Under the pieces are notes generated by a model. That model was not told where the DNA came from. It ran no database searches and was given only the letters and a program-made list of their open reading frames with translations. The translations under genes were made by a program, and so were the position numbers. Below are positions 747-46,419 of a stretch of 64,000 bases of DNA, one piece after another. The first letter of the stretch is position 1; each line of letters starts with the position of its first letter. This DNA is from Dendrobates tinctorius (taxonomy: Eukaryota), in assembly GCF_039654945.1 (NCBI RefSeq), contig NW_027361921.1:10292001-10356000 (forward strand). Direction: 5' to 3'.

Positions 747-755
747 TATATAAAA
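747..755 (+). promoter_or_regulatory. TATA box of the Harbinger MADF gene
   Basis: TATATAAAA 33 nt upstream of the ATG at 788 (context CAACATGC). Confidence 0.6.
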
Positions 756-10369: not shown

Positions 10370-10460
10370 GTAAGACCATGACAAGATAGCCAACTTTGGT
10401 TGGCAAAGGTATATACTGTTGGTCCAGAAGGTACACAAGTTTGGTTAGGGCACAAATCTT

Positions 10461-10586: not shown

Positions 10587-10914
10587 CTTCGCCAGTAACT
10601 TGCTCTTCTCTCCAACCTGCACTTTCTTCTCTACAGGAACATGCTATATCTAGTTTTCCAGTAGCCAATCCCGTTCGGAAGGCCAGAAGGGTAAATTTTA
10701 AAAACCGGATCCGGCGTAATCCGTCTAAAAACGGATAGAAAAACGGATGAACCGGATGAGACGGATCCGGTTTTGTCTGTCAAGAACAAGACGGATCCGG
10801 CAGAAAACCGGATCCGGCACTTCAGGTTTTACAAAACATTTGCCGGATCCGGCATTCCGGCACGACGCCGGATCGCGCCTGACGCCGAAAACCTGATGTG
10901 TGAAAGTAGCCTAA

Positions 10915-13934: not shown

Positions 13935-16900
13935 GGGGGCGTGGCCTGCTTGCAGACCAGAGAGGCCACATAACTCACAGGCTCCTGCTTCTCCTGACTT
14001 AAACCGGCTAATAACAGCACTCTATATTGCCTCTCCTCCCTGTGCACAGTAACGGCTCCTGGAAGGTCCTGGGCACATGATGACCCGAGGGAGAGTGCAG
14101 AAACGCAGTTCCCCGCTGAAGCTCCCGGACTTCTTCCCCCGAGGACAGACTGCACATGCTGCAGGTAAAATGGCGGCGGCTTCCCCCTCAGCTTCCTCCT
14201 GCTCGTCGGGTGGCTCTGGGGGGAGGGGGGCATCTGAGACTCACAACAACCTGTCTCCTATTACTAAAGGAGACATGAGGGATTTTCTGGCCTCCATCCG
14301 TGCTCCCTAAAGGAGACATGCAGTCCATGCTGCAGGAGATTAGAGGGGAAGTCTCGTCCCTGGGGGAGAGAACTGCTCATGTTGAGAGCAAGATGGCTGA
14401 ATATGCCAATTCATGCAAACTGTACTCCAACCTTGCTCCCCAGAGATTTCCTGATTGACAGGATACATAGGCTCCCCAAACCCCGGCATGTGGACCCAGC
14501 CTTGCCCAGAGACACTTTGGCGCGCATCCACTTCTATACTACCAAAGACGCCTTCATGCAGAGGATGAGGAATCACCCTGAGCTCCCTGCTGAATACCAA
14601 GGCTTACAGGTGTTCCCAGACTTATCAGCGTCCATGCTGGCAAAGAGGCCAGAATACGCTCCTGTTTGTAAAGCACTACGTGATGTTTATATCCGATACA
14701 AATGGGGATTCAATCCTGTCAGGCTGATAATATCCTATGAAGGTCGTGGTGTGGTCTGCCAATCTCCCAAACAGGCTGAGAACATGCTAACCGATTGGAA
14801 GATTTCCTTTGCTCCCCGCCAGAACCCGATGGGAAAGAAAATTGTTCAGGACTGTATTGAAACTTGAAGAGGAGGATGATATGCTGTCCGGATGCAGGGT
14901 GCTATGGATTTTGTAACCTATTTCCCTTTTTCCACCTTTTTCTATTTGCTTCAGCACCCCGTCCAAGATAACTCTCGGTTATTTTCCATCTTTTTGGGAG
15001 TGAGCCTTGGAACTGCCCCGAGCTGGCATTTACCTGCGGTCTAGGACTGACCACTCAGGCGTTTCACTGCCTGACTAGCCTGGCCTTTGGCCTAGTGGCT
15101 GCATGTTTAGAATTTTTGTCAGTGTTCTCTGTGTATTGTTTCCCTTGTCTCCTGTTTTTTAGGTACACCTTCGATATGGGTATTTTTAAAGTGGTTACTG
15201 TGGTTCTCTATGTTGCCAACACACGAGCCCTAATGCAGGTGATCTGGGTTCATGAAGATGTTTGTGTGATAGCAAGTTTTATAATGTTTAATTATGAGTG
15301 TTACCAGTATGTCTCTAAATGTTAAGGGGTTGAACTCCCCCTGTAAGAGGTCCATCCTATGGAAGGAGGTGAAAAAATCAGTTGCGGAGATTATCTGCCT
15401 GCAGGAGACACATCTGATAGAAGCTGATAATTTTAGGCTGCGTCACCCACAATTCTCTAATATTTACTTTGCTAATAATAACACTAAAAAAGCTGGGGTG
15501 TGCATCATCTTTAAAAATACATTAGCCTTCAAATGTATCCAGAGGGTAGCGGATCCTGCGGGCAGATTTCTGATCCTCATATGCACATTGAATGGCGAGT
15601 TGCACACTATCACAGGCCTTTACGCCCCCAATCATTCGCAACAGACATTTATCCGCAAAGTACTACATAAAGTGGATGGTCTGGCGCAGGGTGAAAAGAT
15701 ATACTGTGGAGACTTTAATCTCCCCATGGACAAAGATCTAGATTGCTCACGAGGTGGCATTCGGCCTAGGGGGAGTTGAAAGGCATAGCCAAAGAATATC
15801 ATCTACACGATTTCTGGAGGTACTCCCACGCGAGTGAAAAAGATTATACCTTCTATTCCTTCCGACACAGTACATATACTCGGATAGACCATATTCTGGT
15901 GGATACTACGGTTCTTCCTAGATGCGTCTCCTCCAGCATAGGACTAATTACCTGGTCTAACCATGCACCCATTGTTGTCATGGTCACGTGTGACTGAACA
16001 CATCACCTCCAGCAGGGTGAATTTATATGACATGTGTGACCCTGGATACACCGCCTCCAGCAGGGAGTTAGTTAGCGTTAAAACATCATGCGAACCCTGC
16101 CTTTCGGTGGCGTCTGAACCCTTCTCTTTTACTAAATGAGAATGTGACGTGTGGTATCTCTACTGAGTTGACTCACTACTTCCATGTTAACGATAATGGG
16201 GAAGTTTCAGATGAAACGCTATGGGCTGCGCATAAAGTGGTTATACGGGGATATCTCATACAACAAGCCTCCATACTGAAGCGCAGTGGAGGGATACGGG
16301 ATGACCTCTTAGCTAGACTTGACCAGTTGGAATCACTGAATAAAACCTCACCCTCTCAGGTGGTGTCGGATGAGATATACGGGGTTCGCTTTCAGTTGCG
16401 GGAGATTTTGCTTTCTGCTTATGCCCGTAATTTACGTAAGCTTAAAACTCACTTTTACGCCACTGGAGATAGGGCGGGAGCAATACTGGCCCGTAGGGTA
16501 CGTAAACGAGAGGCTAAATCCAGAATAGATGGTTTACAGGATCGGAATGGGTGTCTGGTTAGGAATCCGGTTGACATCGAGGAGACATTTGCAAAGTACT
16601 ACTCCCATTTATATAACTTACATTCTGACCCTCAGACCCATCAACCCACTCAGATAGCAATCGATTCATATCTGCAATCAGTTAATTTACTGTGTGTATC
16701 CCAAGAGCAATTATTGTTAAATGCCCCATTTACAGAGGAGGAGATCAAAGAACTATTAAAAGCAGTAGGCTACACACCGCGCCTGGTCCGGATGGACTAT
16801 CAAATGAATATTATCGCACTTTTCAGGAACTTCTGTCCCCATATTTATTGAGGTTGTTTTCAAGTTGGCGGGATTCAGGCAAAGTTGCTGCCCCTAATTT

Positions 16901-20553: not shown

Positions 20554-21309
20554 CCGTATATACTCGAGTATAAGTCGAGTTTTTCAGCCCCCTTTTGGGG
20601 CTGAAAAAGACTCCCCTCGACTTATATTCGGGTCACGGTGCCAACTTACCTGGTCCCCGTCATCTCCGCGGTCCCAGTCGTCTCCGCGGTCCCCGGTGTT
20701 CGTCTGCGGTCCCCTGCAGCGTCCTGGCGGTGGGTGATGATAGGGCCGCGGCGACGTTCAAAATCTCTGCGAGCCGCTCTCTCCCGTCCTCCGGCAGTGA
20801 TGTGCAGGGGGCGCGATGACGTGGAAAGCACGCGCCCTCTGCCTGAGTCACTGAAGAGCCGGCGATGCTCAGGAGCAGCTGTCATCAACGTAGGTGAGAG
20901 TATATAGTGTTTTTTTTTTTTTTTTAATTCCAGCAGGTTCTGCGGCAGCGGCAGCAACATGATAGGATTACCAGTAATCCTATCACTTTGGGGGCAGCAT
21001 TATGGTATTTGGGCCACCATTCACTGTGAAACATTTATGGGGGCATATGTTGTGCAGCGTTATTTGGGCCACCATTCACTGTGCAGCATTTTGGGGGCAT
21101 ACTGTATGTTGTGCAGCATTATTTGGGCCAGCATTCACTGTGCAGCATTTTGGGGGCATACTGTATGTTGTGCAGCATTAAATTTACCAGTATCTTCGGC
21201 AATTCTCACCCTAGACTTATACTTGAGTCAATAAGTTTTCCCAGGTTTGTGAGGCAAATTTAGGGGGGTCGACTTATACTCGGATCGACTTATATTCGAG
21301 TATATACGG
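20554..21309. mobile_element. Tc1/mariner-superfamily (pogo/Tigger-like) MITE
   Basis: TIR CCGTATATACTCGAGTATAAGTCGA / TCGACTTATATTCGAGTATATACGG; TA TSD; internal about 56-bp tandem units at about 21000-21180. Confidence 0.85.
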
Positions 21310-21776: not shown

Positions 21777-22254
21777 GGGCCCCATTACATGCTTCAATGT
21801 CCCAGCGATCCCACCAACGATCCGACGTGGATGGGATCGTTGGAACAAAGTTAGGTTATCGCTGGTGAGCTGTCACATAGGTAGACTCACCAGCGGTCAG
21901 GACCAGTGAGCACGCTGGTATCCAGGGAAAACAGCGGGTAACTATGAGCCGCGCGGCTCTTAGTTACCCGCTGTTTGCCATGGATACCAGCTCCCAGCGT
22001 CTGCTGTATGGCGCTGGGAGCTCCCTGATCGTTGGTCTCTCGCTGTCACACGCAGCGATGTGTGATGCCAAGCGTGAGACCAACGATAGATTTATGGCCC
22101 AGACCATTAGGCAACGATTAACGATCAGCCAACTGATCGTTGATCGTTGCTACGTGTCACACGCAACAATTTCGTTTCGACATCGCTGCAACATCACCAA
22201 ACTGGTGACGTTGCAACAATATCGTTCACAATATCGTTGCGTGTAATGGGGCCT
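21777..22254. mobile_element. Harbinger-type MITE
   Basis: GGGCCCCATTACA ... TGTAATGGGGCCT termini; TAA TSD (21774-21776 and 22255-22257); palindrome-rich interior. Confidence 0.85.
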
Positions 22255-22325
22255 TAATACAGTTCTGAGCGCATCCTGGGGGACACATAGCGACCCTCGC
22301 GTATGACATCAGTTGCTGCCTCACA

Positions 22326-22520
22326 ATTACTAAATCCATAAAAAGTATACACAGCCCAATGTTCATTTTTTTATTTTCTGTAAAGTAGTTAAAATTTTAT
22401 ACATTTCTTTTCATGTCTTGAATTAGAAAACCGTGTACAATGTTCCCAATGCATGGAAATAACAATTGGTATAAAGATATTGTGATTAACTCATGTTTTT
22501 GAACACACTGCTAATATTTT
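22326..22520. mobile_element. Tc1-like terminal remnant, completed at 36112-36141 beyond the two L1s
   Basis: Reconstructed end, read on the minus strand, is TATAGTAGTGATCAAAATCATAGCAGTGTG. It resembles the vertebrate Tc1 TIR type TA-CAGT(T/A)GTGTTCAAAATAATAGCAGTG (from recall). Confidence 0.6.
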
Positions 22521-23454
22521 TTTTTAAATTCGTTTATTAAACCACAAACAGAATATACTGCATACATACTTGCATATGGTGATAAGCACTGTATAGAATA
22601 TATATATTTCTACTAGTATTAGATGCAAAGCAAAATGTGCATTCCGGTTTACATATGGGATAAAATGTAATGTCAGTTAAATTGTACAAGCCTTTATATT
22701 ATTGCACAAGTAATAACACATATTTAACTTCCTAAAATACAACTATAACTACAAAAACTACTATTTTGCAGCCTGATTTCATACAATCAACTATTTATTA
22801 TGCGATACCTCCACTCTACAGAGTAAGATAAGAGGAATTCCATCTCTCCTAGATCTTTCCAAATTCGATACAGTGTACGTTCATATGGGATAATCGAATT
22901 AATCAAATCAATCCAGATTCTAAGGGAGGGACATGAGTCCCCCATCCACCGCAGTGCCAGTACCTTTCGTGCCATAAATAGCGTCTCCCGCAAAAAGATC
23001 CCAGTATAGTGACCCCATGTCTCCTCATCCCATACCCCAAACAAACAAACCTGTGGCTCAAGGGGAACAGGAGCTTGTATCAGGGAAGTTAATAATGACG
23101 TCACCTCCGTCCAATATTGTGTGATAATAGGACACTGCCAGATCATGTGAATAAAGTGCATCTAATGTATGACATCTCAACCATTCCGATGATTGGAATC
23201 GGCTCGTCTTAGAGTCGTGTCGGAGTCAGATATGATTGGTTTATGATATATAACTGTATCATTCTGTTATTAATAGACGGAGAAACCCCGATCGGAAACT
23301 CCAGAATTTCTTTCCACTCCTCTCACTTTATATCGGGGATGAGCCTTTCCCATTTCCCTTTAACCGGGTTTATGGAGAATTCCGCCCCTACTGACAGCAT
23401 GTATGTATACAAAGAGGAGATGAGACCCTGTGGACCCTGTGAGTTAAGTATTCC

Positions 23455-24027
23455 TGTTGTGAATTCTCTTCTGAGCCGGGGCTCCCTCTGGTGGTTACTG
23501 TGGGTAGTGGAGCTGGCCGGATTGACAGAGGTCTGCCACCTGATGATGATGATTGGAGATCTGAGGTTACTGATTGAAGTATTTAAGTCAGCAGGCTTCC
23601 TTCAATCCCTGCTGGTGAATAGTTCTTCCTTTGCATTCTGAGGTCTGATGTCTCCTGCCTGATCCTGCATTTTTCAGTTAAGTTGTTCATTTGCTTTTCA
23701 TCTGATCTGGTTTTGCCTCTTTCTGCTTGTTGTGAGGGTTCAGCGTGCTCCCTGCTGGGGGCAGTGCTGGACCTCGCTCTATATGTTACAGCTTGTGTCA
23801 GTTTGTTCAGTCTCCTGTTATATTAGTCTCTTTTGCTTTGCTGCCAGTTCATAACAGAATGATGATATAGTGGGGGCGAGGTCGTGAGACCGCAGTGTTT
23901 TTTTGTACATCAGACGTGTTGGATTTTTTTTAGGGTTTTTGCGTGATTGCAGACAGTGTGTTTCCTTTCTGGTTTCCTGGTGGCCTAGCCTATTCCTGCC
24001 ATCCTCCTCGGTGACCTGTTCATAACA
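23455..24027. mobile_element. Solo LTR (573 bp) in L1-c ORF2
   Basis: TGTTGTGAA ... TTCATAACA inverted termini; flanks (T/G)ATTCC duplicated; absent from the homologous position of L1-d (about 31455). Confidence 0.8.
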
Positions 24028-27000
24028 GATTCCTATCAAGGGTAGAGACGAAATAGCATTGTTTACACCCACACATCTCATGTGCGACTGAAAGGCCGAC
24101 CTTAATTGCAGATAGCGAAAGAATTGGGATCTCGGGAGATCGTATTTAACCTGCAATTGTTCAAAAGACCACTGGGTTCCATGATCATGCAAATCACCTA
24201 TCGAGGAGACATTATGTTGAGTCCAAAATTCAGCGGACGGGTGTTCAAGTGGTACCGGAAGATAACTATTATTCCACAAGGGCATTTCAGCTACAATGTC
24301 CCCAAATCCAATCACCCTTTTAATCTGTCTCCACACTGATCGCGCCAGATGAAGTAGGAGCAACAAACGGGCGACACTAATTTTTCCCAATTCCAGAAAG
24401 CCCAGTGGGCAGTTAGCTCATGCGGCATTGAGCAAGTCATTTTCAGAGTTAGGGAGATAATTACCGGGCATCCACTTACTTATAGCTCTGGCTGCTCCAG
24501 ACAGATAATATAGAAAAAAGTCTGGTACCGTTGCCCCACTCCCCTTTTGAGGTCTTTGCAGGGTGTACAGCCTGAGTTTGGGCCTAGTTTTCCCCCATAT
24601 AAAGGATGTAATTTGGGAGTTCAAATTCGCAAAGAAGGACTTGGGTACCATCACAGCACTATGTTGAAGAGAATAGCTGAGCTTAGGGAGTAATATAATT
24701 TTGATTAAGTTACTGCGTCCGGCTACAGATAGCGGGTGTTTACTCCAAGTTGTAAATTTAACTTTAACCATTTCTAGCAGTGAGTGTATGTTGAGCCGCA
24801 AATCAAGCGTGCTGCTTTGAGATATGTGGACACCCAGATGTTTAAAACTGGGTACAATAGGCAATCAGGAGAGTCTCAAGTCGTGGCATCGGGGTATGAG
24901 AGAGGGGCAACAGGGCAGATTTCTCCAAATTTATATACAAGCCGGAATATTTACTGAATTTATTTATGGTGGCAATCACCCGTGTCAGTGTTTCCTCCGC
25001 TCTATCCATAAATATCACCATATCATCAGCATATAAGCCTATGGTGTCTACCCGACCCGCTATTTCTATACCCGCAATATTAGGGGAAGATCGTATGCGA
25101 ATTGCCAATGCCTCGGTTGCAAGAGCAAAAAGGGCCGGGGAAAGGGGACACCCCTGACAGATTCCCCTATGTAGTGAAAAGGACTCAGATATGGAGCTAT
25201 TTACAATGACACGGGCTTTGGGTTTCATATATAATATATTAACCCATTTTAGAAACCTGTCACCAAATCCATATTTCTGTAAACATGCACAGAGGAAAGG
25301 CCACTCAAGGGAGTCGAATGCCTTGGCCGCATCCAGCGATGCCAATGCCCATTTATTGTCTGGCACCAGAGAGCTGTATTGGACCACCGACTGGACTCGT
25401 CTAATATTAATGGAAGTGCTCTTACCAGGCATAAAACCAGTCTGGTCAGGGTGTATAAGTTCCAGTATAATTGAGTTCAATCTGGTGGCCAAGATTTTTG
25501 TAAAAATCTTATAGTACACATTCACTGATGATATGGGGCGATAAGATCCACAGTCTAAAGGGTCCTTCCTCTCCTTTTTAAGCACTATTATATTAGCCTC
25601 GTAGAAGGACTCCGGCATGGATCCCCCCTCCCAAATCCCCCGAAACACCATCAACAAAGGTGGCACTAATATATCCCGATATTACCTGTATAATTCGATG
25701 GGAAACCCATCTGGTCCAGGGGCCTTCCCAGAGGCCATATCCATTATGGCGTTCTCTATCTCCTCCAAAGTGAATTCAGCATCCATAAATTCTTGCTGGG
25801 AAGGGCTTAGTGTGGGAAATGTTATATCTGACAGGTAGTCTAGACACCCCTGACCAACAACGCCACTCTTAGTTGTACAATGATCTATAGTAATCATGAA
25901 AGCAGCTCAGTATTTCTTCAGTTGAGGATAACAAAGTACCATCCAAGCTGCGAATCTGTAATATTGTGTTAGAAGTATTATGTTAACGCACCAAATAGGC
26001 CAAGAATTTACTTGCCTGGTTCCCCAACTCAAAATAGGATTGACAGGCAAAAAATAATTTACGCTTGGACATAGTGTCTATGTGTTGGGTATATAACCTT
26101 TGAGCAGCCAACCACTCCACCCTATTGCCACTAGTTTGATCAGATATGTATGCGACCTCCGAATCTTTCAATCATTGTTCCATCTCATCGTCCACCCTTG
26201 ATGTCACCCGTTTGATGTAAGAGATCGTAGAGGATAAGCAACCCCTCAAATATACCTTAAGGGCATCCTATAATAAATTAATATTCTGAGGTTCAGGGTG
26301 GGATGAGATGAAGCAATGCAACTGATTGATCGTTCTATCGGGCGACTCCACCAACTTCAACCAGAAAGGGTTCAATTTCCATACCATCCTGTTATTTAGC
26401 GGTCCATATTTAAGTTTAAGAATGACCGGACTATGATCTGAAATCCCCCTACTGCCATGTTCTATATTATCCACCCACATTGCTAGACCGCTGGATCCAA
26501 ATATATAATCTATGCGCGACAAGGAGCGCTTAGTGGATGAATGAATGGTAAGTATACTCCCTCGTCTCGGGGTGTCACGTTCTCCATAGATCCAGCCATC
26601 CACTACTTTCCATGAATTGTGACAGTTGGAATGTAGCCAGAGGAGGGGCCTCTCCCTGCATCCCATCACCCAATCTCTGTCTGTCAAGCTGGTTATTCAT
26701 GACCAGATTGAAATCCCCCATGCAGATGACGTCTGCATCTGGATAGTTCAGGGCAAAACTCATCGCCTTCTGGAGAATTGACATATTAGCTGGGGGGGGG
26801 TTATAGATACATAAAATAACATATTTCCTAGAGTTAATTAGTGCATGCACAAAAACGAAACGCCCCTCAGAATCCCTCCGGGCCTCTCTGGCCTCCCACC
26901 TAACGTCCTTATGTATCAGTAACGAAACCCCCCTTGAATAGCTAGTATGGAATGCATGAATAAACCATTGTGACCACGGTTTCTGCACACGCGCCGAGCT

Positions 27001-27431
27001 GCGTCTCTGGTCAGGTGTGTCTCCACCAAGGCCACAATGTGAGGGCGATATTGCCTAAACTGTGAGAATACCTTAATCTTCTGGGGGGTTTTAACATCCC
27101 TCACATTCCAGGTCATGCATATTATTTTAGACCCCATTTTTTACTTATCTCAATATGGTGCATATTATTGCTCGAGCACAGTTTAGAGACATCACATAGA
27201 GAACAGGATTGCCATTGGCTGCGACTTCTACCTAAATAACAATTAAAACTATTGAAAAAGAGAAAGCAGAATAAGAACCTAACAATATAGGAGCAAAGTC
27301 CCACAAGTTCCTTTGCAGGTGATCCCTTATGGGACCGCAGCCACTCAGATGCCTCCGCTGGATCCGTAAAAAACATGGAGGAACCCCCGTGGACAACTCG
27401 GATGCGGGCCAGATAGATCATTGAATACATA

Positions 27432-29067
<1,636 letters not shown>

Positions 29068-30522
29068 TAGTGTTCCTCTCCCTGAGCCGCTTCTTAATTT
29101 CAATGAATTGTGCCCGCTGTTTCTGAAGTTCCATGGAAAAATCCAGGAAAATCGAGGTCACAGCATTGTCGAACTTGATGGAACTTTTTTGCCGTGCGAG
29201 AAGCAGAATGGTATCTCTGTCTTTACAGTTGAGGAGACGTGCCAGGAAAGGTCTAGGTGAGGCTCCCGGAGGAAGGGGTTTGTAGGAACCCTATGAGCCC
29301 TTTCGACGGCGAATACTGGAGAGAATTCATCCCCCAAAGAGGCCTTGAGTCAGCACTACAGAAATTGCTCAGGATGCTGACCTTCTGAGCGTTCCGGCAG
29401 ACCAATGACACGGATATTATTCCGACGCATTCTGTTCTCCAGATATTCCGCTTTCTGCTTCCAGGCATTTATAGAGCCCGCCACCTTTGTTAACTTGGCC
29501 TCCATAGGCGTGATGGTGTCCTCTACTTGGGATACTCTTGTCTCCACTTCCGTAATGCGCCCCCTCATGGCTTGCATATCTTGTTGAAGTCTCCCCACCT
29601 TAGTGTAAACGTCCTCTATTTTCCCCGTCAGGGATGTCCTAGTTAGGGAGATGGCCTGCATCAGCTGTTCAGACACCGGTTTGAGGGTCAGTTCTTCCTG
29701 CTCATTCTCCTTCTCACCCCCAGAGGGACGGTTTTTATGCTGAGCTTGTGAAGGGTTGTTTCTGAGAGACCGTGCACTTTCAGAGGGATCAGGTCTGGCA
29801 AACTTTTAATTTTTCTGCTGCTCCTGACCTATTAGATCAATTCATGATCAGTGACAATGCGGCACAACAGGATGACTAGAGGTGTATACTCTGGGGATTT
29901 TCCCCTACAATTATAAGCACAGCAGGGCTAGTGTTAAATAATTATGGCCCAGGAGCAGCGCCCATTCAGAGGGGTCACATAGATTAGTGAGGGCGATGCC
30001 TGGTGCTGTATCAATGAGGCTTCTTGTGACCAGGGGAAGAGATCCGCAGCACCCGCAGAGACAGCAGCGGTGGGGGGTGCAGAGGTCCCCACAGTAATGG
30101 CGCCAACGGGTAAAGTGAATCTATCATTGGGAGGGGGGAACGCGGGGCCCAATTTTTCCAGGGCACTCACCGCGTATCCCCTTGAGTCTTCAGGATGTGG
30201 GTCACTGCCCGGTAACGCTGCAGCGGTGGGGGCTGGACGCCGCAGCTCTCACTGACAGAGCGTGCGTCTAAGATGGCCGCCACCTCGTGCAAGCCTCGCC
30301 GCCCGTCCCTGCCTCTCCGGCCGCCAGCTCGCCAGAGCCGCTCCGCGTTCTCCCGCGGGGGTCCAGGGGGGGCCCGTTATCCAGGGGTCCTGAATGCTGC
30401 CGGGTATGTCGCAGTGGAAAGGCCTCAGGTGCAGGATAAAGGCAGGATATTAAGGAGCTCCCTCAGCGTGTGTCCCCTCTCCTCAGCTACATAGCCACGC
30501 CCCCTCACACTGCTATTATTTT

Positions 30523-33500
30523 ATTTTTTTTAATTCGTTTATTGAATCATAGACAGGGTATACAATATACAAACTGACGATGATGAAAACACCATATAAC
30601 ACGTATATGTTCCACACAGCATTAATGTCAAATAGTGTATATGTATACCAGTTGTTTACAGAATAAAACATACTGTCAATTACCTTACATTAGTCTGCGT
30701 GTTATTATTCAAATAATAAAGCCTGTCAAACCTCTAAACCATTACTACTACTATAAAACAACAACTATTTGCAGCCTGTGTCCACATAATTAGCTCTTTA
30801 TCATGCGATATCTCCGTCCTACAACGTGAGATGAGAGGAATTCCACCTCTCCCATATCTTCTCAAATTTACTCGGGCACCCTCTGTTTTGATACAGCGTA
30901 CGCTCGTATGGTATAATTGAGTTCACCAATTCAATCCAGGCCCCCCATTCACCGTAGTGCCAGTACCTTCCGTGCTGTAAACAATGTTTCCCGCAAGAAA
31001 ATCCCTGTATAGTGTCCCCATGTCTCATCATCCCACACCCCAAACAGACAAACCAATGGCTCAGGGTGAATATGAATTTGTGCCAGGGAGGTTAATAATG
31101 ATGTCACCTCTTTCCAATAATGTGCTATAATTGGACACTGCCAAATCATGTGAATAAAATCTTTATCTGTTGTATGACATCTCAAACACTCCGAAGACTG
31201 GAACCGGCCCATCTTAAAAAGTTGAGTCAGAGTCAATTATGATTGGTTTATAATATAAAGTTGTATCATTCTGTTGTTAATTGATGGAGACACCTTGGTT
31301 GGTGACTCCAGAATTTCCTCCCACTCCTATCCCCGCGCATCAGGGATGAGCCTTTCCCATTTCACCCTAACCAAGCATATGGCAGATTCCGTTCCCACCG
31401 ATAGCATGTGTGTATACAGAGAGGAGATGAGACCCTGGGGACCCTGTAATTTAAGAATGCCTATCAAGGGTAAGGACGAAATAGCATTATTCACACCAGC
31501 ATATCTCATGTACGATTGAATGGCCGATCTCAATTGCAAATATCGGAAGAATTGCGACCTCGGGACATTACACTTAGCTTGTAATTGTTCGAAAGATAAT
31601 AGTGTACCGCAGTCATATATATCCCCTATCGCAGAAACATTGTACTGAGACCAGAATTTGGCCGACGGGTGGACAAGCAGTGTTGGAAAATAACTATTAT
31701 TCCATAAGGGCATTTCAGCTATGTTATCACTAAATCCAACCACCCTCTTAATCTGTCTCCACACTAATCTTGCCAGACGAAGCATGGGTAGCAGACATGG
31801 GACATTTACCTTCTCCAATTCCAAAAACCCCAGTGGGCAATTAGCACGTGCGGCATGAAGCAGATGGCTCTCAGAGTTAGGAAGATGATCACCAGGCATC
31901 CACTTATTTATAACTCTGGCTTGTCCCGCCAGATAATACAGAAAAAAAATCTGGCAGTGCTGCCCCCCTTTTTTGGCCTTTGTAGGGTGGACAGCTTGAG
32001 CTTTGGCCTGGTTTTCCCCCCATATAAAAGACTTAATCTGGGAATTCAAATTAGTAAAGAAAGACCTAGGCACCACCACAGCACTATGTTGGAGAAAATA
32101 GCTGATCTTAGGGAGTAGTATCATTTTAATTAAATTAATGCGTCCAGCTACAGACAGCGGGAGTTTGCTCCAGATCGTAAATTTGACTTTAACAATCTCT
32201 AGTAATGGATATATATTAAGTTGCAGATCAAGCGTGCTGGTTTGAGAAATATGAACACCCAGATATTTAAAATGTGGTACAATAGGCAGCAAAGAGAGAG
32301 AGTCTCAAGTCGCGGCATCGGGGTATGAGAAAGAGGCATCAGACCAGAGTTCTCCCAATTTATATCCAGGCCGGAATATTTGCTGAATTAATTTATAGTA
32401 GCAATCACCCCCACCAGTGTCTCCTCCTCCCTATCCATAAATATTACCATGTCATCAGCATATAGGCCTATGGTATCCACCCGATCCGCTATCTCTATAC
32501 CCATAATATTAGGGGAAGTTCTCATGCGAATTGCCAGAGCCTCTATTGCGAGAGCAAAGAGGGCCGGGGAAAGGAGACACCCTTGACGAGTCCCCCTGTG
32601 CAGAGAAAAAGACTCCGATATGGAACCATTTACAATGACACAGGCCTTAGGTTTCATATACAATGTATTAACCCATTTTAGGAACCTATCCCCAAAACCA
32701 TCTTTCTGCAAGCATGCGTGGAGGAAGGGCCACTCAAGGGAATCGAAGGCCTTGGCTGCATCCACAATGCCAATACCCACTTAATGTCCGGCATCAGGGA
32801 GCTGTATTGGACCACCGATTGAACCCTTCTAATATTAATGGAAGTGCTTTTACCGGGCATAAAGCCAGTCTGGTCAGGGTGTATGAGTTCCAAAATAGAG
32901 TTCAGTCTAGTAGCCAAGATTTTCGTAAAAATTTTACATTCCACATTTACTAGAGATAAGGGGCGATAAGATCCACAGTCTAGAGGGTCCTTCCCTTCTT
33001 TCTTAAGCAATATGATATTAGCTTCATAGAAGGACTCCGGCATGACCCCCCCCCCCAGATCCCCCGGAACACCAACAACAAAAGTGGCGCCAAAATCTCC
33101 CGGTATTTCCTGTACAACTCAATAGGAAACCCATCCGGCCCAGGGGCTTTTTCCAGAGGCCATATCCTTCATGACATCTCCTATCTCTTCCAAAGTAAAT
33201 TCAGTGTCCATAAAGGCACGCTGAGAAGTACTCAATGTGGTGAACATTATATCAGATATAGTCTAGACACCCCTGGCTATCAATGTCATTTCTTGAGCCG
33301 TACAGTGAACTATAATAATCATGGAAACAACCCATTATTTCTTCAGTTGAGGACACCAATGTATCGTCAGAGCTGCGGATCTGTAGTATTGTGTTAGTTG
33401 TATTGTGCTGCCGCACCAAATAGGCCAGAAATTTACTAGATTGGTTCCCTAGTTCAAAGTAGGACTGGCGGGTAAAAATAATTTACGTTTGGACTTAGAA

Positions 33501-36111
33501 TCTATGTGTTGAGTATATAATCTTTGGGCAGTCAGCCACTCCACTCTTATTACCACTAGTTTGATCGGATATGTAAGCGGCCTCTGAATCTTTCAATCGC
33601 TGCTCTATTTCGTCATCCTCCCCCGACGTCACCTGCTTGATGTAGGAGATCGTAGAAGATAGGCAACCCCTCAGGTATGCCTTAAGGGTGTCCCAAAATA
33701 AATTAACATTCCGGGGTTCGGGGTGGGAGGACACGAAATCATGTAATTGGTCAATTGTTCTGTCAGGTGACTTAACCAATTTCAGCCAGAAAGGGTTTAT
33801 TTTCCATGTCATCCTACCACTTGGTGGGCCATACCTGAGTTTAAGAATGATTGGACTATGATCCGAAATCCCCCTACTTCCATGCTCAAAACTATCCACC
33901 CACACTGCCAGACCACTAGATCCAAAAATGTAATCTATGCGAGTGGATGAGTGGCACGTATACTCTCTTATCTCTGGGTGGCGCGTTCTCCATATATCTA
34001 ACCATCCACTACCTTCTATAAACTGTGATAATTGGGATGTAGCCGCTGCCGAGGTCCGACCTTGTGTCCCATCATCCAGTCTCAATCTGTCAAGGCGATT
34101 ATTCATAACCAAATTAAAGTCCCCCATACAAATGACATCGTTTATGTGTAATTCAGAGCAAAATTCAATGCTTTCTGGAGAATTGACGTACTCGCTGGAG
34201 GGGGATTATAAACACACAGAATAACATATTTCCTAGAGTTGATCAGTGCATACACAAATATGAAGCGCCCTTCAGAGTCTCTCCGGCCTCCTGAACCTCC
34301 CATCTAACGTCCTTGTGTATTAGTAATGAGACTCCCCTGGAATAACTGGTGTGAAATGCGTGTTTAGACCACTGAACCCATGGTTTAGGTACACTCCGAA
34401 CCGTATCTCTGGTCAAGTGCGTCTCGACCAGAGCCACAATGTGAGGGTGATAGAGCCTGATTTGTGAAAATACTTTAACCTTTTTCTGGGGGGTTTTGAT
34501 ACCCCTCACATTCCATGTCTTGCATATTAATTCAGAACCCATCTCTACTTATCTGGGCATGTTGCACATCGGCGCCCAAGAAGAACTCAGAGACACCACA
34601 TAAATAGCAGGACTTCCATTGGCTGCAACTTCTACCTAAGTAACATTTAAAGCTAAAACTAAAGTTTATGAAAAAAAGAGAACTAGATATAAACCTAGTA
34701 ACATAGGAGCAAAGTCCTGCGCCCCTATTAAAAAATAAACAAGGGGATACCATCACTGAACGCAGTGTCCGGTATTGTAGATATCTGGGTGCTCGCCAGG
34801 AGAGCTCCATTTAAGCCTGCAATTAAGGAATCCAGATGAAAGTAGACACACTAGGATTCCTTTGCAGGAGATCCTCTATGGGACCGCAGCCACTCGGTGG
34901 CCTCCGCCGCATCCGTGAAAAACACGGAGGAACCCCCGTGGACAACCCGAAGACGAGCTGGATAAATCATGGCATGCACAATGTTCCTTTCCCTGAGCCG
35001 CTTCTTGATGTCGATGAATTGTGCACGCTGCTTCTGGAGTTCCATGGTGAAATCCAGGAAGATTGAGATCACAGCATTGTTGAACTTGATGGGACTCTTT
35101 TGTCGTGCAAGGCGCAGAATGGTGTCTCTATCTTTACAGTTGAGGAGACGTGCCAGGAAGAGTCTTGGTGAGGCTCCCGAAGGCAAAGGCTTGGTGGGAA
35201 CCCTGTGGGCTCTCTCAACAGCGAACACCGAGGAGAATTGATCTCCCAGAGAGGCCTTAAGCCAGCCCTCTAGGAATTGCTCAGGGTGCTGACCTTCATA
35301 GCGTTCAGGCAGACCGATGACACAGATGTTATTCCGACGCATTCTGTTTTCTAAGTCGGTCTCCTCTCCACCCCCTCAGGGACGATTTTTACGCTGAGAT
35401 TGTGAGGGGGCATTCTGTAGAAAGGGTGCACTCTCAGAAGGGTCGGGTCTGACAAATTCCTTTAATTTTTCTGCTGCTGTCGATCCTTTAGATCGATTCA
35501 TGATTAAGAGCAGTGAAACACCGGTATAGCTGAAATTGTACAGTCCAGAAATCCTCCCGTTGCAATTATATACACAGCATGGACCACGTTTATTAATTAT
35601 AGCCTGGGAGCGAAGTCTGTGTAGATGGAGACAGAAGATCACTAAGGCTCCTATGGCAGGGGGAAGGGGGAGGGATATCCACCCTCAGAGACAGCAGCAA
35701 TGGGAGGGGGAGCAGGTTCCCCCACAGTAATGGCACCAACAGGCCAGCGATTCAGTTCAGAGAGAGGGAATAATACAGGGCCCGTCTTTCAGGGCACTCA
35801 CTGCCTATCCCTCAGATCCTATAGGATACAGATCCCTGTCCCTGCGACGCTGCAGCGCTGGAAGATGGACGCCGCGCTCCCTCTGATAGAGCGCGCGTCC
35901 CGCCGTCCACCCCGGCTTCCCAAGTCTCCTGCTCACAGGAGCCGTCTTGTGCCCCTCCTCGGAGCTCCCGGGGGGTCCCGACACCAGCGGACACCAAGCG
36001 CTGCCACCAGATCAAGAGCAATATACAGGCGGTATGTGCAGGATATATGAAGGATAGGCAGGAGCTCTCATAGCTTGCGTCCTTCCTTCACCACTACATA
36101 GCCACGCCCCC
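30523..36111 (-). mobile_element. Full-length L1 LINE (L1-d), relative of L1-c; ORF1 coiled coil deleted at about 35355, ORF2 from 34542 frameshifted
   Basis: MGSELICKTWNVRG, DAAKAFD, GTRQGCLLSP, YADD. 5' GGGGGCGTGGC. Third target copy CACACTGCTATGATTTT at 36112-36128. Confidence 0.93.
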
Positions 36112-36436
36112 CACACTGCTATGATTTTGATCACTACTATACCTCTTGAGTAGGGATGAGCGATATTGCCCAATATCGTATCGGAATTCCGAAAATATCG
36201 GATATCGAAATTTCCGATTTCCGATATCAATGCAAGTCAATGGGAGAAAAAAATTGAAATTACAAATAACCACTACAGTGCTATATAATGGATAAAATGG
36301 AGGGGAAACACCTCAGGATAATGGGGAAGGAGTTTGCAGAGGCAGAGGAGCAAAAAAGTTGCTAGAAAAATGCAGAGAGTGAAAGCTGTAGCAGGAAAAC
36401 TGGTCGCCATCTTCTTAACAGCTGTATTTTTTCTGT

Positions 36437-36662
36437 GGGTTAGGATTAGTTGGGGTAGGGTTAAGGTTTATGGTTAGGGTTAGTAGGGTTAGGGTAAGGG
36501 TTAGGGTTGGTTAGGGTTATTAGGGTTAGGGGTTATGATTAGTAGGGTCAGGGTTAGTAGGGTTATGGTTAGGGGTTAGGATTAGTAGGGTTATGGTTAG
36601 TGGTTAGGGTTTAGGGTTAGGATTAGTGGTAGGGGTTAAGGGTTAGGGATAGTTAGGGTTAG
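36437..36662 (+). repeat. Degenerate (TTAGGG)n telomere-like tract
   Basis: Many exact TTAGGG units mixed with TTATGG, TTAGGA and TAGTAGGG variants. Confidence 0.85.
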
Positions 36663-37005
36663 TGATTTTACATTATTAAATTAAAACTGCCGGTGGTGGT
36701 GTCAATATTCCCTTTGGCTGACATGTGTCCGCGTTCAGCTCACCTTGCTTTGCAGGGAGTTTCCAGGACCACCACGTGGAGGAACGGATACACTCCCTTT
36801 AAACCATGCTTAGTCTTCTTCTGTTGATTATATTACTGTTATTTAGTAATTCTGCATATTGATATTCTGCCTTTGGTTCATGTACATCTGCTCCTACTGC
36901 TTCCTAAACCTCCGTCTATTGTTATTCTGCTATTGGCTGGTTGCAGAATGTCCCAAACCCAGAGGAAATACGCAGAAGTAACAGTAGGCAGAGGAACTTG
37001 AGAGA

Positions 37006-37967: not shown

Positions 37968-38320
37968 AGCTGGCGGTACTGTTGCCCAGAAACACAGCAT
38001 GCTGTGAAAGTGGCAGTCACGGAAATGGGCATTAGCTGGCGGTACTAGAGCCCAGAAACACAGCCTGCTGTGAAATCAGCAGTCACGGAAATGGACACTT
38101 GCTGGCGGTACTAGAGCCCAGAAACACGGCATGCTGTGAAAGTGGCAGTCACAGAAATGGGCACTAGCTGGCGGTACTAGAGCCCAGAAACACGGCTTGC
38201 TGTGAAATCAGCAGTCACGGAAATGGGCACTAGCTGGCGGTACTAGAGCCCATGGAAAACAGTATGAGGTGAAAGTCAGTCACAGAACCAGGTGCTAGAT
38301 GTTGGTAGTAGAGGCCAGAG
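37968..38320. repeat. About 66-bp tandem array (5-6 units)
   Basis: Unit AGCTGGCGGTACTAGAGCCCAGAAACACGGCATGCTGTGAAAGTGGCAGTCACGGAAATGGGCACT; alternating GTGG/TCAG variants. Confidence 0.9.
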
Positions 38321-41328: not shown

Positions 41329-43095
41329 GTAGAAGTGGCTGGGAATGCTGTATTGTGGGATTGCAAACCCCAACATATCGATAAAGGCTGGCTTGCTCAC
41401 CAGCCAGAATGGTAGCATTTCCACTGCAAGCAGTTTGGCAATGCGAGAATTCATGCCCTGTGCTCGTGGGTGGTTTGCCGAGTACGGGCGCCTTTTCTCC
41501 CACACCTGTGTGACAGATGGCTGCACACTGGATTGGGAGTGTGAGGATGCCAGCGAGCGATTGGGATGCTGATGTGGACGAAGTACAGACAGTGTGCCGC
41601 TGTACAACACTGCCTGCAGATGCACCCTGGCATTCTGGCGAGGAAGCGGGAGCAGCTGTGTGCGAGCTGGAGGAAGAGGTGGCCACTGTGGCTGAAGAGG
41701 TGGAAGGTGGGGGACCAGCTGCAGGTGGCGAATCATCTTGGGTGTGATGCTGCCACTCCACAGGGTGCCTGTTCCTGACATGCATCAACATATTGTTGGT
41801 ATTAAGGTTGCTGACGTTCTTCCCTCTCCGCACAGTTTGTCGACAAAGCTTGCATCTGACTACTGTAACGTCATCTGCAACTTGGTCGAAAAAGGCCCAT
41901 GCACCACAACTCTTGGGCGCACCTTTTGTGCTCTTTAAAAGAGCCCTGCTCCTAACGGGTGCTGAAGTTGAGGGAGCCGACAACCAATTTTTCCCTCTTC
42001 CTCTCCCATGTGGACGGCCACGCTGCGCCACACCTGCAAGCTCTTCCTCTTAGCTATCCCCACGTGCTTGCTGCCCCTCAGCATGCCGTGATGGGTCAAG
42101 GACCTCGTCATCCAATACACTTTCATCAGCAGAAACTGGCAGCTGAGTTTCATCATCTGCTGACTGGGGTCTGGTCTTCTTCCTCAGACGCACGCAGTGG
42201 TTGCGCATCTGTGCACACTAACTCTTCTTCAGCTGCAGGAATGCTGTCTGGCTGGCACACAGATTCCAAGCTAACAGATTCTGAGAAGAGGATTAAGGTT
42301 GGCTCCTGGCCCTCTGAATGTCTGGGCAATTTAGTGGGCGGTGAAGAAGCAGATGGGTGCTGCTCTTCAGTGGCCTGACCTGATGTGGTGGAGAGGTCTT
42401 GGGAGGATGCTGTGCTCATTGAGGTGGATGCCTCAGCTGCCATCCAACCAACAACGGTTTCTACTTGATCCTCTCTTATCAGCCTATGGCCCTGCGCTCC
42501 TAACAAGCTGCACATAAATGACTGCTGCCGGGAGAAAGTAGGTGCTGAGTGACTTGGGCCTGCTGCTTGCTCTGGATGTGCACCATGTCTAGCTGCTGAT
42601 GCACCTCTTCCGCGGCCGCCGCAGGGACGTCCCTTACTCCCTGCCTTCTTCATCTCTATCGATGGATTCAGAACGGCAAGAAAGTTATTATTAGGGATTA
42701 GTGTGCTTATTCCTGTAGGACTACAAACAGGTATAAGAAACACTAATGGCACTGTATGATGGTGTATCTGCTACACTTTATTTGAATCTAGTGTGGCCTA
42801 CACAAAGAGTAACGTGTGTTTGTGGTGTTGGTGTACACGTTATGGTCGGATGTCACAGCGCAGTAAATGACACTGCTGCGATACTAAAAAAAGAAAGGAT
42901 TCTCCGGGACTGGGCCAGGTGCTGTGTGGCACCAGCCACAGTACAATCCCTATATAGTGTTTAACTTTAACCTCAATAGATGCTGTGAGGTAAAGTAACA
43001 CTTATAGGGGCACTGAGAGTGAATTTACTGGTGAAAAATTTGGGGGTGCGCGATAGAACAGGCCGCACTAGGGGTCCTGCAGTCTGATGTGACTA

Positions 43096-44652
43096 CAGTC
43101 ATGGCCAAAAGTTTTGAGAATGACACAAATATTAATTTTTACAAAGTCTACTGCCTCATTTTTTCTAATGGCAATTTGCATATACTCCAGTATGTTATAA
43201 AGAGTGATCAGCTTAACAGCAATTACTTGCAAAGTCAATATTTGCCTAGAAAATGAACTTTATCCCCCAAAACACATTTCAACATCATTGCAGCCCTGTC
43301 TTAAAAGGACCAGCTAACATCGTTTCAGTGATTGCTCCATTAACACAGGTGTGGGTGTTGATGAGGACAGGACTGGAGATCAATCTGTCATGATTAAGTA
43401 AGAATGACACCACTGGACACTTTAAAAGGAGGCTGGTGCTTGGCATCATTGTTTCTCTTCTGTTAACCATGGTTATCTCTAAAGAAACACGTGCAGTCAT
43501 CATTGCACTGCACAAAAATGGCCTAACAGGGAAGAGTATCGCAGCTAGAAAGATTGCACCTCAGTCAACAATCGCATCATCAAGAACTTCAAGGAGAGAG
43601 GTTCCCTTGTTGCCAAAAAGGCTCCAGGGCGCCCAAGAAAGACCAGCAAGAGCCAGGACCATCTCTTAAAAGTGTTTCAGCTGCGGGATCGGGCTACCAG
43701 CAGTGCAGAGCTTGCTCAGGAATGGCAGCAGGCAGGTGTGAGTGCATCTGCATGCACTGTGAGGCAAAGACTCTTGGAGCAAGGCCTGGTCTCAATGAGG
43801 GCAGCAAAGATGCCACTTCTCTCCAGGAAAAACATCATGGACGGACTGATATTCTGCAAGAGGTACAGGGAGTGGACTGCTGAGGACTGGGGTAAAGTCA
43901 TTTTCTCTGATGCATCCCCTTTTCGATTGTTTGGGACATCTGGAAAATGGCTTATTAGGAGAAGACCAGGTGAGCGCTACCACCAGTCTTGTCTCATGCC
44001 AACTGTCAAGCATCCTGAAACCATTCATGTGTGGGGTTGCTTCTCAGCCAAGGGAATGGGCTCTCTCTGTCTTGCCTAAAAACACAGCCATGAATAAAGA
44101 ATGGTACTAGAATGTCCTCCAAGAGCAACTTCTCCCAACCGTCCAAGAGCAGTTTGGCGATCAACAATGCCTTTTTCAACATGATGGAGCACCTTGCCAT
44201 AAAGCAAAGGTGATAACTAAATGGCTCAGGGAACAAAACATAGAGATTTTGTGACCATGGCCTGGAAACGCCCCAGATCTCAATCCCATTGAGAACTTGT
44301 GTTCAATCATCAAGAGACGGGTGGACAAACAAAAACCTTCAAATTCAGACAAAATAAAAGCATTGATTTTGCAAGAATGGACTGCTATCAGTCAGGATTT
44401 GATCCAGAAGTTGATTGGGAGCATGCCAGGGAGAATTGCTGAGGTCCTGAAGAAGAAGGGTCAACACTGCAAATATTGACTTGCTGCATTAACTCATTCT
44501 AACTGTAATATAACCTTTTGCTACTCATATGATTGCAATTATATTTCTGTATGTGATAAAAACATCTGACAAACACACATAAAAACCAGAGGCCAGCAGA
44601 TCATGTGAAAATATAATATCTGTGTCATTCTCAAAACTTTTGGCCATGACTG
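43096..44652 (+). mobile_element. Tc1-like element with DD35E transposase pseudogene (43469-44479), Traveler-like
   Basis: TIR CAGTCATGGCCAAAAGTTTTGAGAATGACAC; TA TSD; FSDASP, FQHDGAPCH-(35 aa)-PIENL; several stops and frameshifts. Confidence 0.9.
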
Positions 44653-46419
44653 TACAAAGACTGACCTAGTGGGTGCTGCACTTCCCCAAAAAAAGCACAC
44701 AGGCGGTCTGCACAGCGGAGGTGACTAAACTCTGCAAAGCGCACCTGAGCACCAGGAAAATTGAGGGATTAATGGGGGTAAGGGATTGGGGGGGGCGATT
44801 CTGGGGGGGAACCCCTCACTGAAAAATCCCTATATAGCGTTCACCAAAATGTACTGGATGGTGAAGCTACACTTTTAGGAAAAAATAGGGGAAGGGGATT
44901 TAAGGAATGAAAAGAAAAGGCTGTGAAAAGGCAGTGAGACACACACCACACAGTGCTGCAGCAAGAGGAGCTGCTGCAGTGAATGTGCGCTGCACTGTCT
45001 CACTAAGCACCTCACTGAGAGCCTGCACAGCACAAAAAATGAAACTGAGCGGGGTCAGTGAGGAAAAGACTGCTTCTGTAACACACAGGGGCTGCTACAG
45101 TCGCTGAAAAACAATTTCTATCGCTACTAGATCCGAGATCTCTCCCTATCTTCAACAGCAACCTATCCCTATTTGCTTTCACAGTAGAGTGAGGCTAAAA
45201 TAGCAGGCGCAGCCTTTTATACTGCCTGATCACACCATCCAGCCAGCCAATTGCAGCGCAGCCCCTAGCTAGCTCGTTTGGACGCCTCCTACCAAGCTTA
45301 GGGGAGTTACACAATGTTGTCAGCAATTCTTCAGCTCCTGATTTGCTCCACGGAGCACTCAGATGCTGAAGGATTATGGGATTTCTGATTTCCGATGTGA
45401 AAAAAATATCGGAATCGGAAATCGTAATTCCGATATCGCGAATATCAGGCCGATTTCCGATATTTCAATATCAGAAAGCTCATCCCTACTCTTGAGACAT
45501 TATTGGCCGTTCCCCACTGTCATCTTCTACTGGCCATGGGTGCTCAAATATTTGAACATCACTACACATGAGCTACTCTTAAAACTAGCAGGGTGAGAGG
45601 CCAGAAATCAATAAATTGACATGTAATGAGCTTCTTTGAGTGTCCAAGTATGGAATCACTTGTCTCCTCTGAGTTACCATGGTAGGAGCAAGGCGGATTA
45701 GGGTGAGGATTATGTGATCCAGACTCTGGACTAGTGAGACTGGACAGTGTGGAAGACGGTGGTGCTGGGAAACATACTGGAATCATTATCTGCTATCCAA
45801 CCGACCACCTGTTCACACTGTTGTCGCTTCAAGAGTGGTGTCCCAACCCCACTGCAAAGTGGGACATGAAGCTAGGTCTCATGGATGAGTGTGTTTGTTG
45901 TGGTCCCGCAGCAGGCACAGTTTCACCTGGCCCACAGCCTCGGCCTCTGTATGCACCATGAGCAGCATGTCCACTTCCCCATTCAAAAGCGCACGCCTTG
46001 CTCATATTAAATTAAGTGTGCAGCTAAGAGTGATATCACTATGGACTAAAATAGAATAGATGTAGTCCTGATAAGGAGTTTGGGTTTTAGGTTTCAGCAG
46101 CAAGAACTGTAAGGCTATAAATCCTAATGCAATGCACTACTATCATTTTTCCAGCAGCTACCCCTACTGCAAATGCAGCTAATAGCGGTATTTACATTGC
46201 ATTAATAGATTTATCCCAGAAAAATAATTTTTTGTTTATATGTATCAGCAGGAAGGCCTGTAAGGCGATATAAACCCTGACTATAAGCCTGTAATGCAAG
46301 CTTTCCTTTCTCCAGGAGCTATCCCTACACTACAGCTAACAGTGGTATTTATATTTAATAGAATAGATGTACCCCTTATAAGGACTTTTGGTTTTAGGTT
46401 TCTGCATCAAGGACTGTAA

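Follow-up and report, generated by a model that had tools for sequence, protein, structure and literature searches.

How did two full-length, L1-like elements come to stand head to tail at exactly the same 17-bp site? The locus belongs to Dendrobates tinctorius (GCF_039654945.1, contig NW_027361921.1, positions 10,292,001-10,356,000, forward strand), and the whole stretch of 64,000 nt that we analyzed is referred to here as the window. There are exactly three copies of the 17-mer CACACTGCTAWKATTTT in the window, on the + strand in every instance, with variation among them at 2 positions. Three matches were reached by 0 of 100 shuffles, and no further copy was found in the 64 kb beyond those of the array. 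The intervals between the copies are filled by L1-c and L1-d, both on the minus strand and both decayed (Table 1). The left end of each element is a T-run (the complement of poly(A)) with TTTATT (the complement of AATAAA), and the right end of each is a GC-rich 5' UTR beginning GGGGGCGTGGCTATGTAG. The terminal signatures of the lineage are accordingly a 3' end ..AATAAACGAATT followed by an A-run and a full-length 5' end GGGGGCGTGGCTATG... A preliminary description of this DNA had reported three 17-mers bracketing two elements of one lineage, which were diverged throughout and carried different lesions. The array is as described: the two elements are approximately 80% identical in nucleotides along their length, with distinct stops and frameshifts. 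The re-use of both nick positions, which was also claimed, is borne out by the same 17-bp duplication at both insertions.

Table 1. Features of the array, in window coordinates
Feature	Position	Strand	Remarks
Empty-site left flank	22257..22503	.	AT-rich
17-mer copy 1 (CACACTGCTAATATTTT)	22504..22520	+	Target-site duplication (TSD) adjoining the L1-c 3' end
L1-c, 7985 bp, full length	22521..30505	-	9 in-frame stops, several frameshifts
L1-c T-run	22521-22525		TTTATT (AATAAA signal) at 22533-22538
579-bp insert	23453..24031	.	Within L1-c ORF2, toward its 3' end; L1-d lacks it
Tc1 transposon nested in L1-c ORF1	27423..29075	-	With a TA duplication; terminal inverted repeats of 151 bp, 96.7% alike; transposase frame of 326 aa, open, at 27651-28631
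L1-c 5' end AGGGGGCGTGGCTATGTAG	at 30505		
17-mer copy 2 (CACACTGCTATTATTTT)	30506..30522	+	Between the L1-c 5' end and the L1-d poly(A)
L1-d, 5589 bp, full length	30523..36111	-	4 in-frame stops, several frameshifts
L1-d tail complement ATTTTTTTT	30523-30531		TTTATT at 30538-30543
L1-d 5' end GGGGGGCGTGGCTATGTAG	at 36111		
17-mer copy 3 (CACACTGCTATGATTTT)	36112..36128	+	TTTT/GATC across 36128/36129
Empty-site right flank (GATCACTACTATACCTCTT..)	36129..36149	.	About 21 bp ahead of an unrelated high-copy element

The coding regions and the termini of the two elements have the character of a vertebrate L1. The ORF2 of L1-c/d gave a match to RVT_1 (E = 3.6e-36), in addition to fragments of Exo_endo_phos. 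Its RT piece matched human L1 ORF2p with E = 1.7e-54, compared to 1e-17 for R2, and intact outgroup ORF2s aligned along the whole of both elements. The type of ORF1 was settled by a sequence search of the PDB. Residues 2-147 of the ORF1 of L1-d matched the RRM and CTD of human L1 ORF1p (2ykp, E = 1.9e-8) and also mouse ORF1 (2ldy, 2jrb), and coiled-coil signals were seen upstream of the RRM/CTD region in L1-c. Pfam was silent on the ORF1 of L1-c, L1-d and their amphibian relatives, and the ORF1 translations hold no CX2CX4HX4C motif. The ORF1s of the Tx1 clade are described as RRM/zf-CCHC variants (PMC5203782), a Type I-like organization, whereas the ORF1 of c/d is of the human-L1 type and has no zinc knuckle. 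At the termini, the complements of the poly(A) signal are accompanied by T-runs, the junction is TTTT/GATC and the TSD measures 17 bp. In ORF2, in the Type II ORF1p and in the poly(A), nick and TSD, c/d thus agree with the vertebrate-type L1 clade. Judged by these hallmarks, L1-c and L1-d can be classed as ordinary poly(A) L1s, rather than Tx1-type elements; that their nearest named relatives are entries for "LINE-1 reverse transcriptase homolog" is a hint only. Common to vertebrate L1 (human ORF1p, PDB 2ykp; ORF2p, PDB 8sxt) and the c/d lineage are an ORF1 of coiled coil, RRM and CTD, an ORF2 with APE endonuclease and RT, AATAAA with poly(A), a TSD in the range of 7-20 bp, a TTTT/R nick and the 5' attrition of copies. 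The c/d lineage is unlike the known vertebrate L1s in its RT, which is only about 48-57% identical to the nearest proteins in the searched databases.

The reading that we favor, to which we assign a probability of roughly 0.55, is that an ordinary L1-endonuclease hot spot was re-used; it draws on the L1 hallmarks and on human precedent, as applied to one locus. Two separate events of target-primed reverse transcription would have brought members of one poly(A)-type L1 group, long diverged from each other, into one site. Under the TPRT model, the TTTT/GATC boundary of the + strand would mark the first-strand nick, and the + strand T-run of the 17-mer indeed abuts each poly(A) complement, as TTTT priming requires. 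The first insertion would leave the TTTT/GATC nick site intact beside one copy of the duplication or, alternatively, its own tail would supply TTTT/AA. Another L1 could later re-use the nick site, because some L1-endonuclease sites are strongly preferred. For the nick used second there would be two candidate places, the TSD copy upstream and the border between poly(A) and 3'UTR in the resident L1. The stops given in Table 1, the numbers of private changes at conserved residues (5 in c, 4 in d) and CpG decay (48 in c, 52 in d) do not set the two elements apart in age. The resident copy may also aid the exact re-making of the 17-bp duplication. The 3' end of the incoming cDNA would have approximately the same sequence as the + (bottom) strand of the first 19 bases of the resident L1, and could thus pair with the top (sense) strand of those bases. 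Speculatively, such pairing would put the second-strand break at the 5' border of the resident L1, and the c/d pair raises the idea that the 5' end of a resident L1 may guide the position of the second-strand cut.

Precedent for re-use comes from human disease. Among the well-characterized insertion sites, 6 of 66 were used more than once, one of them by two Alus in the same orientation and with a same-sized TSD (PMC3219598). The re-used human sites (NF1, APC, F9, BTK; Wimmer et al. 2011, PMC3219598) resemble the c/d site in that independent, L1-endonuclease-dependent insertions of poly(A) elements met at the identical nucleotide of a T-rich nick, in one case with orientation and TSD size also in common. 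The human insertions are separate alleles in different people, whereas c/d follow one another head to tail along a single chromosome and, unlike the human cases, are both full-length L1s of one group. Estimates of the chance of a random double hit are rough and spread over orders of magnitude. Should the site be a hot spot, the array would be fixed, stacked evidence that a non-specific L1 endonuclease re-uses both nick positions, a behavior known until now mainly from separate human disease alleles. As a counterpoint to the hot spot, a full-length pair of one group that re-uses both nicks would be the routine product of a target-specific element.

A less probable but serious alternative, which we hold to be unlikely on present indications, is that the c/d lineage is itself target-specific, with an endonuclease or RNP that recognizes the 17-mer region as part of a repeated element, which might be a degenerate Tc1-like end. 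The target would be restored within the duplication at each insertion, leading to head-to-tail arrays as in Tx1, R1 and SINEU-3. Such specificity would account for two independent insertions of full-length elements at the same first and second nick, and for sources about 0.8 apart in dS that yet have common 5' and 3' terminal sequences. Tandem copies sandwiching the TSD are a signature of target-specific retroposons, and Tx1 families aimed at mariner, Harbinger and piggyBac transposons exist (PMC4494074). On the other hand, the window has neither a sign of the target as a repeat or Tc1 end nor another 17-mer, at the junction there is a plain TTTT/R site, primed by poly(A), and both the ORF1 type (RRM/zf-CCHC in the Tx1 clade, PMC5203782) and the nearest named relatives point to LINE-1 and not to Tx1. 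The two readings also differ in what they predict for other copies: target specificity would have most of them flanked by CACACTGCTA..ATTTT (AAAATNNTAGCAGTGTG) and the same adjoining sequence, whereas under a hot spot they would have no more in common than a T-rich nick motif, within unrelated flanks.

The identity of the target bears on this alternative. The preliminary description had placed the insertions in a Tc1 terminal repeat, and this assignment is unsupported. The left flank has no inverted partner in the window and no Tc1 transposase nearby. Against the terminal repeats of both Tc1 elements in the window it showed no significant similarity, with weak local alignments only, and the likeness of its reverse complement CAGTGTGTTCAAAAACATGAG to the Tc1 end CAGTTGTGGCCAAAAGTATTGAC is a loose one, by eye only. 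On the right side, the sequence from about 36150 onward belongs to the end of a different and very high-copy element, and the empty site has no second copy within the 64 kb window. Taking the left flank as a Tc1 end would leave the priming nick approximately 10 bp outside of it, in locus-specific DNA, which argues against target specificity.

The known target-specific systems are instructive in both their likeness and their difference. The architecture of the c/d array is the same as that of the crocodilian Tx1-Mar LINEs and SINEU-3 in Mariner-N4_AMi (Kojima 2015, PMC4494074), where sequential insertion into a target of the Tc1/mariner superfamily, with a TSD of about 16 bp, produces tandem copies sandwiching the TSD. 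The target there is common to 90% of 300-odd copies, whereas c/d are known from one site, in which no transposon could be recognized; moreover, the Tx1-Mar LINEs are of the Tx1 clade, whereas c/d have a human-L1-type ORF1p and poly(A). In the account cited in PMC4494074 (Christensen et al. 2000), Tx1L of Xenopus laevis occupies one site of the Tx1D DNA transposon. Like c/d it comes from a frog and is a LINE of the broad L1 group, and its residence in a DNA transposon was the model of the preliminary description. By the same account, Tx1D is a piggyBac-type non-autonomous element and the specificity of the Tx1L endonuclease was shown biochemically, whereas c/d are known from sequence alone. LINEs aimed at a Tc1/mariner transposon, with copies in tandem around the TSD, have already been described (PMC4494074), so the idea of such a lineage would not be new in kind. 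Somewhat more doubtful than target specificity as such is the fuller proposition of a true L1-type, non-Tx1 lineage that has long retained integration into a site of about 17 bp in a repeated element, with members at dS of about 0.8 and head-to-tail arrays. If true, this long-kept specificity for about 17 bp would extend targeting from the Tx1 branch to canonical vertebrate L1, and c/d would be the first canonical L1 (Type II ORF1p, poly(A)) with such a habit.

Hot-spot re-use entails two insertions, and the differences between L1-c and L1-d argue for them. These differences affect 12.3%, 8.5% and 32.1% of the three codon positions in turn (chi-square p = 3e-46), and the bias is present alike in ORF1, EN, RT and the C-terminal part. 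Over 1147 codon pairs (NG86), dS was 0.844 and dN 0.094, for a dN/dS of 0.111 (bootstrap 0.091-0.137); in the control, these columns gave 1.23 and 1.66 when they were read in one or the other wrong phase. None of the in-frame stops (9 in c, 4 in d) is common to both. Relative to the outgroup P0122, two frameshifts are seemingly common to the pair. One of them is two different events; the other is ambiguous, since the CT-rich sequence around it is prone to slippage. In 8 of the 9 intervals compared, contigs from other copies in the genome match d at 86-94% identity, and c matches d at 78-86%. Of the 30 alignable sites at which d differs from almost every family contig, 26 have the family letter in c. 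Other copies are hence nearer to d than c is, and the two elements are not each other's closest relatives, a check that the preliminary description had proposed. Its case against a recent tandem duplication was right, and we interpret L1-c and L1-d, from this comparison, as separate retrotranspositions from long-separated sources into the same site, neither of them a duplicated copy. The codon-position bias between two copies would by itself separate a double insertion at one site from a tandem duplication in a decayed LINE pair, and this test is re-usable on other such pairs.

It is very improbable that a duplication was followed by ectopic gene conversion of the whole copy from a diverged L1, or that an assembly artefact merged two haplotypes. 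Gene conversion would bring selected differences into a duplicated copy, but a bias that runs from ORF1 through EN and RT to the C-terminal part would need a tract of >5 kb between sequences that are 80% identical. Long-read assemblies can contain false tandem duplications, but the c/d joint is crossed without a mismatch by read-derived contigs in 4 runs (all from a single sample, and perhaps the very data of the assembly), and different L1s at one site on two haplotypes would still amount to two insertions there. Least probable of all is a single L1 insertion with subsequent tandem duplication of the L1 and 17-mer unit, by unequal exchange or replication slippage between the two 17-bp duplications, and decay of both copies; although this is the simplest path to TSD-L1-TSD-L1-TSD, and the differences among the 17-mers fit old copies just as both L1s are broken, it is rejected because dN/dS is 0.11, no stops are common and closer relatives of d exist elsewhere, whereas neutral decay in place predicts equal change at the codon positions and a dN/dS near 1, the frameshifts differ where they can be resolved, and a dN of 0.094 sets an upper limit to the summed decay since insertion, far under the total divergence of 20%.

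The c/d family is abundant and shows 5' attrition, with a summed contig depth of 1000-4000 over the body and 180-400 at the 5' end, compared to about 5 for single-copy sequence; among the loose contig ends listed, none fell at a border of the two elements. A protein word search returned no close sisters (best identity 56% for RT and 58% for ORF1), and an exhaustive search of 1.84 billion protein representatives gave best identities of 48-57%. The contigs of three ORF1 relatives represent other L1 lineages and begin within the element, and a metagenome scan with the 18-base 5' end turned up only four matches, of 20-23 bases and attributable to chance. Within the window, blastn with L1-c matched c and d only. 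The neighboring L1-like elements of the window have no zinc-knuckle ORF1 by Pfam, and the three others (about 3.6-7.6, 14.4-18.4 and 58.6-63.0 kb) show protein identities of only 26-46%. Several such L1 lineages are found side by side in one genome.

Exactly three copies of CACACTGCTAWKATTTT are present in the 64 kb window, with starts at 22504, 30506 and 36112, all on the plus strand; three matches were found in 0 of 100 dinucleotide-preserving shuffles. These copies bracket L1-c and L1-d, two decayed L1 elements, as the preliminary description had stated. On the plus strand, the TTTT end of the 17-mer leads directly into a T-run and TTTATT at both elements, complementary to a poly(A) tail and an AATAAA signal, respectively, and the sense 5' start of each element, GGGGGCGTGGCTATGTAG, immediately adjoins a 17-mer. 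This arrangement identifies the 17-mer as a target-site duplication (TSD) of 17 bp. GATC lies directly after the TTTT of the third copy, and the first-strand nick would therefore have been TTTT/GATC; such a nick and a TSD of this length are ordinary for L1. The window contains no N. The joint between the two elements is crossed without mismatch by read-built contigs from four runs (one sample, which may be the assembly's own data), which excludes a scaffolding artefact as the source of the tandem.

Features of the double insertion and its surroundings (window coordinates)
Feature	Position	Strand	Description
TSD copies	22504-22520; 30506-30522; 36112-36128	plus	17-mer
L1-c	22521-30505	minus	7985 bp, between 17-mers
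L1-d	30523-36111	minus	5589 bp, between 17-mers
Nested Tc1 in L1-c ORF1	27423-29075		TA duplication; 151-bp terminal inverted repeats 96.7% alike
Insert in 3' part of L1-c ORF2	23453-24031		579 bp, absent from L1-d
Harbinger-type MITE	21779-22254		GGCCCCATTACA ends; internal palindrome 21914-21991; 250 bp left of L1 target site
Second Tc1	43094-44654		47-bp terminal repeats 94% complementary
High-copy element, end	36150-36430		GAGTAGGGATGAGC.. then ATATCGGAAAT-type short inverted repeats
High-copy element, second end	45375-45495		
Degenerate interstitial telomere-like (TTAGGG)n array	36430-36665		~230 bp, just right of high-copy element
Short tandem arrays in flanks	37968-38319; 21006-21180		units of ~66 bp and ~59 bp, respectively

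The open-reading-frame pieces of the elements contain RVT_1 (E = 3.6e-36) and endonuclease fragments, and the reverse transcriptase (RT) piece is much more similar to human L1 ORF2p (E = 1.7e-54) than to R2. The ORF1 of L1-d aligns along its length with L1 ORF1p of human and mouse, at the RRM and C-terminal domain (E = 2e-8), a coiled coil lies upstream in the ORF1 of L1-c, and no zinc knuckle is visible in ORF1. By these features it belongs to the Type II ORF1p known from vertebrate L1, whereas RRM/zf-CCHC variants are described for the ORF1s of the Tx1 clade (PMC5203782). No close relatives were found in protein collections: the best RT identity among 1.84 billion representatives was 48-57%, the named nearest proteins being the "LINE-1 reverse transcriptase homolog" of Xenopus tropicalis and similar entries. 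Matches from a metagenome scan were all attributable to chance. Copies of the family are numerous in the genome (summed contig depth 1000-4000 in the body; 180-400 at the 5' end; ~5 at the single-copy joint). The alignable UTR parts of L1-c and L1-d differ by 21% and their synonymous sites by 51%; near identity holds for the initial 18 bases and for the final ~12 before the tail, and the ends of this group seem to be under constraint. Contig depth drops about six-fold from the bin 30748-30946 to the bin 30549-30747, with loose ends at 30822, inside the higher-depth bin, and thus in most relatives of L1-d the terminal ~200-300 bp of the 3' UTR seem to be different.

We consider a re-used ordinary L1-endonuclease hot spot the probable origin of the tandem (probability about 0.55). 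The ordinary human L1 machinery re-uses identical sites with unexpected frequency, at 6 of 66 characterised disease sites, one of them in the same orientation and with a same-sized TSD (PMC3219598), which supports an ordinary double hit here. The preliminary description had instead proposed an L1 lineage specialised on a Tc1 terminal repeat. Its observation that both nick positions were re-used stands, the same 17-mer being present at all three junctions, and this re-use favors lineage-wide targeting of the site, as do the full length of both elements, the separation of their source elements (dS ~0.8) and the tandem arrangement itself: copies that sandwich a TSD characterise target-specific retroposons such as SINEU-3 and Tx1-Mar, residents of a mariner transposon (PMC4494074). 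However, every hallmark is that of a non-specific L1, the ORF1 type speaks against Tx1, the window contains the target sequence nowhere else, and we regard such targeting as rather unlikely. The choice between the two rests on indirect grounds; the window holds no further copies of the L1-c/d group, and the loose ends listed for the read-built contigs do not include the element borders. The placement of the 17-mer in a Tc1 terminal repeat was not supported. The left flank (22257-22503), located between the 17-mer and the Harbinger-type MITE, has no inverted partner and no transposase remnant nearby, and aligns only weakly and locally with the terminal repeats of the window's two Tc1 elements; by eye, there is a loose likeness between its end and that of a Tc1. 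Were it a Tc1 end, only ~7-8 bases of the 17-mer would lie within it, and the priming nick would fall ~10 bp outside, in locus-specific DNA. Recurrent use of a site by the L1 endonuclease is already on record, and so are LINEs that reside in DNA transposons as tandem copies enclosing a TSD. If targeting were true, the novelty would be a canonical L1, not Tx1, as a target-specific element.

The same layout would result if exchange between two TSD copies had duplicated a single insertion in tandem and both copies had then decayed. The two elements are ~80% identical in nucleotide sequence, and copies decaying in place are expected to change neutrally. Intact outgroup ORF2 proteins, together with the window's other L1s, fixed the reading frames independently. 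The differences between L1-c and L1-d fall at 12.3%, 8.5% and 32.1% of codon positions 1, 2 and 3 (p = 3e-46), with the same bias in ORF1, EN, linker, RT and the C-terminal part. Across 1147 in-phase codon pairs dS was 0.844 and dN 0.094, for a dN/dS of 0.111 (bootstrap 0.091-0.137); wrong-phase controls on the same columns gave 1.23 and 1.66. Most of the divergence thus arose under purifying selection, having accumulated in active source elements ahead of insertion; dN caps the summed post-insertion decay at ~9%. In-frame stops number nine in L1-c and four in L1-d, none in common. Two frameshifts looked common to both elements relative to the outgroup: the first resolves into two distinct events separated by 45 bp, and the second, located in a CT-rich run prone to slippage, is ambiguous. 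In eight of the nine intervals with a long contig of another copy listed, that contig is 86-94% identical to L1-d, while L1-c is 78-86% identical; L1-d departs from nearly all family contigs at 30 alignable sites, and at 26 of these L1-c has the family letter. Local duplication is rejected on these grounds, and the earlier argument against a recent one is borne out; L1-c and L1-d are not each other's closest relatives. Codon-position bias between two dead copies, which separates sequential insertion from local duplication, is the most useful product of the analysis. Whole-copy gene conversion or an assembly artefact is a very unlikely source of the tandem.

After a first insertion, the TTTT/GATC nick site would survive beside one TSD copy, and the resident's tail would create a TTTT/AA site. 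The 3' end of the incoming cDNA would be nearly identical to the plus (bottom) strand of the opening 19 bases of the resident, which lie 17 bp from the nick, and could pair with the top (sense) strand of these bases; that the resident thereby sets the second-strand break is speculation. The stop counts, the private changes at conserved residues (five against four) and CpG decay (48 against 52) do not separate the temporal order of the two insertions.

In the Tc1 nested in L1-c, a minus-strand frame of 326 aa (27651-28631) is free of interruptions and contains HTH_Tnp_Tc3_2 and DDE_3; the transposon appears young and may still be coding. The transposase remnants of the second Tc1 are 31% identical to it. 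Within the 579-bp insert, CTGTTATGAAC lies near the start and occurs a second time. To the right of the third 17-mer, after ~21 bp (36129-36149), the end of a different, very high-copy element begins, with a summed contig depth of ~8000-14000 against ~5 for single-copy sequence, roughly two thousand-fold; its family is different from the Harbinger at 391-10911.
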